Part shown: in pieces, positions 48,977 through 50,554 of the stretch
Numbering within the stretch: position 1 is the stretch's first letter
Layout: each line of letters begins with the position of its first letter
Assembly (NCBI GenBank): GCA_002269645.1
Contig: NIVC01000573.1
Location: forward strand, 467,928-531,927
Length of the DNA: 64,000 nucleotides
Direction of reading: 5' to 3'
Source: Macrostomum lignano
Taxonomy: Eukaryota
The notes under the pieces: generated by a model
Told to the model about the DNA's origin: nothing
Seen by the model: only the letters and a program-made list of their open reading frames with translations
The model's database searches: none
Translations under genes and position numbers: made by a program

Positions 48977-50554
48977 TTAAGCTGACATTAGCTGGTTTTC
49001 ATAAAATGAACCCAATATTTCGTCACCATCCTTATCAGCAATGATATAGGTGGTGGGATTTGTATTTAAAACTTTACTGATAGTAAATTTCTCACTTATT
49101 TTCCAATATCCTTTTCTTCCCTTTTCAAACTTATCTTTCCATTTATAGATATAAACAGAATCACCAACTTTAAAACCTTTAGTTTTCTTTTTTTCAAATT
49201 CTCCAAAAGTAACCCTAACATTTTCAGGATTGTTATAAGCTTGTTGAGGAGTCATCTTTATAGCTGAATGATATGAATTGTTATAATCTTTCACTACGTC
49301 TGGTAATATTTTTACCCACTTTTGGTTACCATTAAGACTAAACTGAAACCATAAGTTCTTACCTAAAGTTCTATTAAATCTTTCTATTAATGCGTTTTTA
49401 CTCTCTCCATAAATAGAATAAATTTTATTAATATACTCCCCATTCGCGTCCTTTTTCCTTTCTTGTCCTTTTTCAAAATGATACAATTTATACATGTGAG
49501 GATTGTAAAATTCTTTTCCTTCGTCAACACACAACCTTTCACTTTTTTCTCCAATGCTTCTAAAAGCACTAGCAACCACCTCTCCCTTTTTGGATTTTAA
49601 AGGAACAGCCCACGCGTAGCGAGTAAAACCATCTAATATTGTTAAAATATATTTATATCCTTTATCATTTGGCATCGACATTAAATCAGCATACCAAATT
49701 TCATTCTTTTTGAAGTTCATGATTTTTCTATAAAATTTAGGTTTTCGGTATTCTTTATGAAGAACCTTAGCCTTATTATAACTTAGCCCACTACCACTTA
49801 ATAACAAACATTCGACACAATTATTACCATGTTGGTTGTAATTAATTCCTAAACCAAATTTAACTTTAGATTGTAGAATCTTTTTAACCATCCACCTAGT
49901 TAATCTCTGGCCTACTGATAAGCCTTGTAAGTTATCTAATCCTTGAATCATTTTTTGATCGGCTTCATGTTTTAATCTTAACGCTTCTTCGGGAGGGTTC
50001 TTGTCAGCATCTCTATATGCTAAGTCGTGATAGTATGCTAACCAATCAATCCCATTTATTGGAATTGAATCAGCTTTTGGAGTATTGTCAGGATTTAATC
50101 TTAAATCCAAACGAGTGCCGGGTAGTTTACCCCCAATCTTTCGAATGAGGCTGGAGCACACCTTAAGCGGCGATAATTACCGCCCATCTCCGTCTGCTCT
50201 CTGAACCTTCTCCTTATATTTAAAATACTTAGGAGCTTGGCTGCGCATTGCCACCATGTCTTCAAGCTTTTTACCATTGGGAAGAGGAGTTACCTCTGTT
50301 CCTTCAAAAGATTTCTCAATCGAAGTGGTACTTGAAGCTGTATGACGGGTTTCACGCAATTTGGAGACATCGCCACTAATAGTGACTAGCAGTAGCTTTG
50401 CTTCTACCACTCAGGCCACGGGATAACCTGCATACGAGTACCCTGGAATGTGTAATTCATTTGTATACCTACCAGTAGTAAAGATTGGTGGTAAGCTTGT
50501 TAATCCTTTTTGAATATCCAACAATCCTCCTTCAAACACTAATTGATTGCTCAT
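48977..50554 (-). CDS. PLA2X (parvovirus-type phospholipase A2)-retroviral integrase fusion, two exons split by a group I intron, 424 aa spliced
   Basis: Exon 1 50554-50426 (AAAAATG; MSNQLVFEGGLLDIQKG...NELHIPGYSYAG) plus exon 2 50122-48977 (PGTRLDLRL...INGIDWLAYYHDLAY...). Splicing restores YAGPG and joins it to HDxxY. Integrase DDE core follows: IWYADL, TILDGFTRYAWAVPLK, LCVDEGKEF, IERFNRTL, YNNSYHSAIKMTP. Confidence 0.92.
50123..50425 (-). ncRNA. Group I intron ribozyme, subgroup IC1-like (P1-P9 with P2.1 and P5abc), 303 nt, no internal ORF for a homing endonuclease
   Basis: P1 caggU/Gccug with U.G at the 5' splice site; P2 aguggUag/cuacugcu; P2.1 gucacu/aguggc; P3 gucucc/ggagau; P4 ugcgug/ugcgca; P5a cuucaag-uacc/ggua-aaaag-cuugaag with A-rich bulge; P5b GAAA loop; P5c agagg/ccucu; P6 gcc/ggu; P6a cuccu/aggag; P7 G-A-GAGCA/UGCUC-C with the G-binding G-C pair; P8 ggcggu/aucgcc; P9 GAAA loop; P9.0 ag/cu. 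Confidence 0.93.

Follow-up and report, generated by a model that had tools for sequence, protein, structure and literature searches.

A probable group I intron within the phospholipase A2-like/integrase gene of a Polinton-like element in a flatworm genome

Introduction

Group I introns of the Rfam family RF00028 have been reported from the Polinton-like viruses (PLVs) of protists, with 53 matches in Paulinella micropora, 2 in Desmodesmus armatus and 44 in Rhodomonas lacustris cluster C3/GKS1, and the genes of the cluster C3 elements include those for an rve integrase and a cysteine protease (PMC12220804, 2025). The phospholipase A2-like (PLA2-like) domain PF08398 is known from virion-module genes of Polintons, adintoviruses and PLVs (Yutin et al. 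2013; Starrett et al. 2021, PMC8502044; PMC11296320). Here, we analyze a 64,000-nucleotide stretch of contig NIVC01000573.1 (the window), in which a virus-like element bears a gene that joins a PLA2-like domain to an rve integrase core and is divided by an insert matching RF00028. We consider it highly likely that the insert is a genuine group I intron without an open reading frame (ORF), equipped with P2/P2.1 and P5abc and placed in phase 0 after the first Gly of a Gly-Pro-Gly in the PLA2-like/rve integrase gene of a Polinton-like element, and that this element resides in a Macrostomum-like flatworm genome. The intron is presumed to splice, and the present copy has most likely decayed in part.

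To our knowledge, nuclear group I introns occur almost exclusively in the ribosomal DNA (rDNA) of protists, fungi and algae, and those of animals only in the mitochondria of early-branching lineages. An intron of this type in a protein-coding gene on an animal chromosome would widen the known distribution, even if the copy is a relic. The literature searched contains no report of a group I intron from an animal genome, an adintovirus or Macrostomum, and within that literature this is the first RF00028-type intron seen in an animal genome. The initial annotation of this DNA had called such an intron undescribed, which overstates its novelty: the kind itself is already known from the PLVs of Paulinella, Desmodesmus and Rhodomonas, though none of those lies in an animal genome (PMC12220804).

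Compared by description rather than by sequence, the intron shares with the protist PLV introns its RF00028 family and approximate size (303 bp here, 309 to 376 bp there), and the cluster C3 gene set of rve integrase, protease, capsid and ATPase resembles that of the element described here, whereas the host genome in this case is that of an animal (PMC12220804). By architecture alone, it resembles the IC1 introns of nuclear rDNA, of the Tetrahymena large-subunit (LSU) type, with which it shares P2 plus P2.1, a P5abc three-way extension that has an A-rich bulge and caps P5b with a GNRA loop, a GAAA loop on P9 and a U.G pair in P1. The IC1 label and the close parallel to Tetrahymena claimed in the initial annotation are overstated, and the transfer from rDNA that it proposed would be conjectural. 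Unlike the Tetrahymena LSU intron, it interrupts a protein-coding gene and not rDNA, is without P9.1 and P9.2, and ends in a nucleotide other than G. A further parallel is a system of 2009 cited in PMC11296320. As far as that citation describes it, an ORF-less intron there likewise interrupts a conserved part of the coding sequence in a gene of a DNA virus, with a nuclease-like ORF directly upstream of the split gene; in contrast to that description, the nuclease match here is below the Pfam cut-off and comes without a link to a cleavage site. The gene itself also differs from its described counterparts, as the PLA2-like domain is fused to an rve integrase here and in hundreds of metagenomic relatives, whereas the adintovirus description joins it to a virion-protein domain (PMC8502044).

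A predicted group I intron divides the PLA2-like/integrase gene

The divided gene is read from the minus strand and consists of the following parts.

50426..50554, minus strand, exon 1 of the PLA2-like/integrase gene: 43 codons ending YSYAG, from the ORF list
50123..50425, minus strand, group I intron: 303 nucleotides (nt), phase 0, without internal ORF, delimited by RF00028, the helices and the bounds set by the homologues
48977..50122, minus strand, exon 2: remaining PLA2-like domain (His-Asp present), rve integrase core and C-terminal domain

Exon 1 opens with an ATG at 50554 and its frame ends ..HIPGYSYAG at 50426; read-through beyond that point meets a stop after 4 further codons. Exon 2 is a 381-codon frame that begins PGTRLDLRL.. 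at 50122 and continues down to 48977. The insert between them amounts to 101 codons with 2 in-frame stops, its longest ORF is at most 51 amino acids (aa), and it stands out by a GC content of 45.9%, versus 32 to 36% for the exons and 32% for the element.

The two exons were searched as separate queries. With the exon-2 protein as query, 443 homologues are retrieved at E <= 0.001, nearly all of them derived from metagenome assemblies, and most of the full-length ones carry both PF08398 (phospholipase A2-like) and PF00665 (rve). At least 55 of the 120 best homologues have no extra residue at the junction, which has the form aromatic-x-G/P-G-T (the slash marks the insertion site), and about 12 more divergent homologues are likewise uninterrupted across it. 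Exon 1 aligns to the N-termini of the uninterrupted homologues as far as the invariant Gly. As the homologues read straight over the junction, exactly 50425..50123 must be removed to restore the domain, in phase 0. The initial annotation had placed a 303-nt insert inside a protein-coding gene, and the uninterrupted homologues now fix its junction exactly.

The domain profiles follow the same boundary. PF08398 scores 33 to 44 bits (cut-off, 23.9) on uninterrupted homologues, starting from profile position 2 and spanning the junction, while on the first 90 aa of the window's exon 2 it reaches 19.1 bits, starting from profile position 21 with the His-Asp present, and exon 1 alone gives no match to PF08398. 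Judged by these alignments, the PLA2-like domain is complete only across the junction, and the insertion separates the codons for Gly and Pro in a conserved Gly-Pro-Gly stretch of the PLA2-like N-terminal domain. The rve profile scores 31 bits on exon 2 of the window, below the Pfam cut-off of 32.6, and 39.6 to 40.7 bits on its homologues, one of which (P0005) matches PFV integrase.

The covariance check with Infernal and RF00028 that the initial annotation had proposed proved significant. With the filters relaxed, the full RF00028 model (positions 1 to 253 of 253) aligns to 50435..50132 of the minus strand and scores 63.2 bits, the gathering score being 50 (E of 1.3e-15 in 751 nt and 2.8e-14 in 16.5 kb). 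Together with the explicit helices described below, this match upholds the assignment of 50123-50425 to a group I intron. A gathering scan of all 64 kb with the default Rfam filters returned 0 matches; as RF00028 is found once the filters are relaxed, the miss is an effect of the filters and not absence, and routine annotation would miss this intron. Such introns are probably under-counted, because the default Rfam filters missed a 63-bit match, 13 bits above gathering, in 64 kb. No further RF00028 match was found within 47.5 to 64 kb and no second copy of the intron by blastn. A search of phage DNA gave as its sole match a 48-nt core stretch in Brochothrix phages.

Animal nuclear genes normally carry spliceosomal introns, and this is the one point that favors taking the insert for a spliceosomal intron, as opposed to a ribozyme; a translated insertion or a chance fold would be other non-ribozyme readings. 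We regard all three as refuted. The match to RF00028 is full length (E of 1e-15), the insert has its 2 in-frame stops, its ends on the coding strand are not GU..AG, and the long-range pairings P3 and P7 are present.

Secondary structure of the predicted intron

The helices of the group I intron, all on the minus strand, are located as follows.

50412..50430, minus strand, P1 with the internal guide sequence: 8/8 pairs, U.G at the 5' splice site with the U at 50426
50372..50408, minus strand, P2 and P2.1 hairpins: 5/5 and 6/6 pairs, both in the minimum-free-energy (MFE) fold
50205..50358, minus strand, P4-P6 domain including P5abc: from the helix check and the MFE fold
50337..50260, minus strand, P5abc extension: P5a with a 5-nt A-rich bulge, P5b with a GAGA loop, and P5c
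50154..50199, minus strand, P7 region: P7 as 50199-50195/50158-50154, enclosing the P3 3' strand and P8
50191-50185 with 50369-50363, minus strand, P3: 7/7 pairs, long range
50184-50169, minus strand, P8: 6/6 pairs
50131..50150, minus strand, P9 hairpin: 7/8 pairs, GAAA loop, from the Rfam alignment

With each helix written out and checked by script, 93 of 94 pairs over P1-P9 are standard. P4 forms 6/6 pairs, P5 5/5 and P6/6a/6b 11/11, and the P5abc three-way junction is built from P5a (12/12 pairs in two stacks of 7 and 5), P5b (8/8) and P5c (5/5). The initial annotation had listed the P1 U.G splice pair and P3, P4, P6, P7 and P8 as present, and every one of their pairs forms. Its description of P7 stands as well: the helix reads GAGCA/UGCUC, versus GACUA/UAGUC in the Rfam consensus, with 5/5 pairs, and the two pairs that differ are each changed on both sides. 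The initial G-C and A-U pairs match the consensus, and the G-binding pair is thereby kept.

An unconstrained MFE fold of -96.1 kcal/mol recovers all nested helices (z = -2.66; 0 of 100 shuffles as good). In local shuffles, a 7-bp P3 arises by chance in 120 of 5000 and a 5-bp P7 in 891 of 5000. P3 and P7 alone are weak evidence, and the weight is borne by the covariance model.

Relatives interrupted at the same boundary

A closer look at the protein relatives shows that 8 ORFs among the 120 best exon-2 matches start at or beside the junction. ORFs beginning at the boundary include P0003 and P0044, P0007, P0012, P0026, P0031 and P0080. The first 13 residues of P0003 and P0044 agree at 10 of 13 positions with the read-through of the intron 3' end in the window (59% identity overall), and this stretch spans the P7 3' strand and P9. 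On the strength of this peptide, a homologous intron very probably also occurs in P0003 and P0044. Of the three differences, the one from Gly to Glu would correspond to a G-to-A change opposite U, by which the P9 pair would be kept.

Searches from the other side of the junction point to the same place. The exon-1 ORF found no match in a word-indexed protein database; an exhaustive search with it returned two genuine short ORFs, P0129 and P0132, along with three spurious repeat proteins. P0129 and P0132 have 43 and 42 aa, are 58% and 50% identical to exon 1, and end at the boundary with the same invariant Gly, after which one has a different five-residue read-through and the other stops immediately. 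By these ORFs, the same codon boundary is interrupted in several diverged lineages. Interruption of one codon boundary of a conserved loop in several lineages is the signature of site-specific intron homing in eukaryotic viruses.

These short ORFs also bear on the published PLVs, in which the intron is carried by a short protein of about 50 aa that was left unannotated (PMC12220804). Here, the corresponding short ORF is exon 1 of a PLA2-like/integrase fusion, and the resemblance of the 42- to 47-aa exon-1 ORFs to that protein suggests the same arrangement there. The unexplained protein of the protist PLVs would thus gain an identity, probably as exon 1 of a PLA2-like/integrase fusion.

As a separate observation, P0045, P0007 and P0065 lie on metagenome contigs of 41 to 65 kb, which exceed the length of a PLV. 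These contig sizes suggest integrated copies in other eukaryotic genomes.

The 3' end and splicing competence

By the pathway expected for the family, an external guanosine would attack at the P1 U.G pair in a first transesterification, the freed end of exon 1 would then attack the 3' splice site in a second, and the two halves of the PLA2-like domain would be rejoined in the mRNA. Several points weigh against such an intron at this locus. The foremost is that its last nucleotide (50123, the junction being fixed by at least 55 homologues) is not G. A terminal guanosine is close to universal in group I introns and is needed for exon ligation (Cech; Michel and Westhof). P10, formed between exon 2 and the guide sequence, has 4/6 pairs, and several other positions score equally. 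In the relatives P0007, P0012, P0026 and P0031, the start codon abuts the first exon-2 codon, and their inserts would therefore end in G. That the interruptions in relatives represent homologous introns is indicated only indirectly, at the peptide level. The pairings are read from one sequence only, and splicing itself is something that we infer from sequence alone.

P9.0, beside the 3' end, forms 2/2 pairs. As other positions pair as well as P10, RNA pairing does not select the 3' splice site. Among alternative 3' splice sites ending in G, none yields the junction of the homologues, and P10 does not discriminate between them.

Since the terminal nucleotide is not G, ligation of the exons at the correct site is doubtful in this copy, and so is its splicing competence; the first splicing step may still run. 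The terms complete and self-splicing in the initial annotation are doubtful on the same ground. It could be argued that the intron is nonetheless fully competent, either because it tolerates a terminal nucleotide other than G or because a nearby in-frame guanosine serves as the 3' site and adds a few residues to the PLA2-like loop. P1, the P7 G-C pair and all core helices are indeed intact, both exons are open, and in-frame guanosines are present a few codons upstream of the junction. Those guanosines, however, lie inside the P9 stem, their use would add residues at the junction that no homologue has, and the near-universal terminal guanosine of the family speaks against the first variant, so that we think full competence unlikely. 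A genuine intron in a probably decayed copy remains our preferred reading.

The virus-like element

The intron-bearing gene belongs to an element with the following features.

48060..64000, no strand, virus-like element, AT-rich (32% GC): from composition and gene content, left edge at about 48.06-48.4 kb, right end past the window
50532..51038, minus strand, 168-aa ORF with a weak likeness to a restriction endonuclease: Pfam RE_Eco47II, 21.7 bits, E of 1.7e-4, cut-off 25.9
51797..53278, plus strand, 493-aa ORF, candidate capsid protein: by size and position only
53298..54095, plus strand, A32-type DNA-packaging ATPase: Pfam Pox_A32, 29.6 bits, cut-off 22.8
55589..57321, plus strand, fibre-like gene with 19-aa repeats: PHROG tail-fibre families, 57-bp tandem repeat, ORF list
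60994..63263, minus strand, polymerase-like region in pieces: at least 4 short ORFs in two frames with at least 3 interruptions, ORF list

The Pox_A32 ATPase, the rve integrase and the tail-fibre-like repeats mark the element as virus-like by gene content, and a Polinton-like virus is the assignment to which they point. Whether it is a Polinton or an adintovirus in the strict sense is a candidate assignment only, with the capsid recognized by position and the polymerase by eye. The initial annotation, which saw an integrated Polinton/adintovirus in an animal genome, holds for the virus-like element and its Macrostomum flank, while its label stays a candidate.

The 493-aa capsid candidate has no match in Pfam, PHROG or PDB, and a single-sequence AlphaFold model of it is useless (pLDDT of 32). 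Penton and protease candidates are assigned by position only. By eye only, the polymerase-like pieces are a candidate for a protein-primed PolB; searches of Pfam, NCBIfam and PDB gave them no support, and the protease candidate is without tool support too. Since this region is broken up, we take the copy to be most likely an integrated, partly decayed one, and the region meant is the polymerase-like one. The element also has a 225-aa ORF, and its remaining genes are open frames.

The 168-aa ORF overlaps the start of exon 1, and its end lies 108 nt upstream of the point at which the intron is inserted. It has no match in PHROG, NCBIfam or PDB; given its likeness to RE_Eco47II, it may encode a nuclease of the free-standing type by which ORF-less introns are mobilized. 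A bolder scenario would involve this gene: a PLV lineage that infects or circulates in flatworms and depends on ribozyme self-splicing for expression of its integrase, with the Gly-Pro-Gly site re-invaded across lineages, aided by the upstream nuclease-like gene. We rate this scenario as improbable. If it were true, this would be the first group I intron acting on mRNA in animal cells, and it would hint that the virus is transcribed at a place or time at which the spliceosome plays no part, such as the factory of a helper giant virus.

The fibre-like gene matches the description of bacteriophage-like fibre proteins in protist PLVs (PMC12220804). It runs on in a second, overlapping frame, as two genes or through one frame change. 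Within it, 55712-56029 holds 5.6 copies of a 57-bp (19-aa) repeat.

Two inverted repeats were also observed. At the left edge of the element, 48060-48367 is an inverted-repeat structure of about 310 bp with a C/A-rich spacer, its arms (48060-48124 and 48307-48367) being 90 to 96% complementary; this may be either a structure at the terminus of the element or the insertion of a small foldback. The second inverted repeat, GC-rich, 30 nt long and 87% complementary, is at 53618-53647/54108-54137 and links the ATPase gene to the beginning of the gene that follows.

The host flank

To the left of the element, and 0.8 kb from it, lies a gene of the host.

46120..47304, minus strand, host gene, CAP59-type glycosyltransferase-like: 75% identity to Macrostomum lignano proteins over its full length; PF11735, 25.8 bits

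At the sensitivity used, the family of this gene is almost confined to Macrostomum, with four M. lignano paralogues and a next match at 26% identity; an exact look-up of the gene found no record. The 75% identity of the flanking gene to Macrostomum lignano proteins places the element in an animal (flatworm) genome.

The GC content falls sharply at the edge of the element, from about 45-56% to 32%, as it would if a protist PLV (from a food alga, an epibiont or environmental DNA) had been misassembled onto flatworm DNA. The metagenomic origin of nearly all relatives and the protist origin of the published intron-bearing PLVs agree with that explanation too, and only one end of the element, and so of any target-site duplication, lies within the window. 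We nevertheless give a misassembly little credence, as the element is contiguous with the Macrostomum-like gene, the host side is a repeat-rich region of animal type, and integrated PLVs usually differ from their hosts in GC content (PMC12220804).

On the host side, 4383-13482 is a 9.1-kb satellite array with a 32-bp unit in 285 copies (94% matches). More than 20 other tandem arrays occur there, and the element thus lies in a very repeat-rich region.
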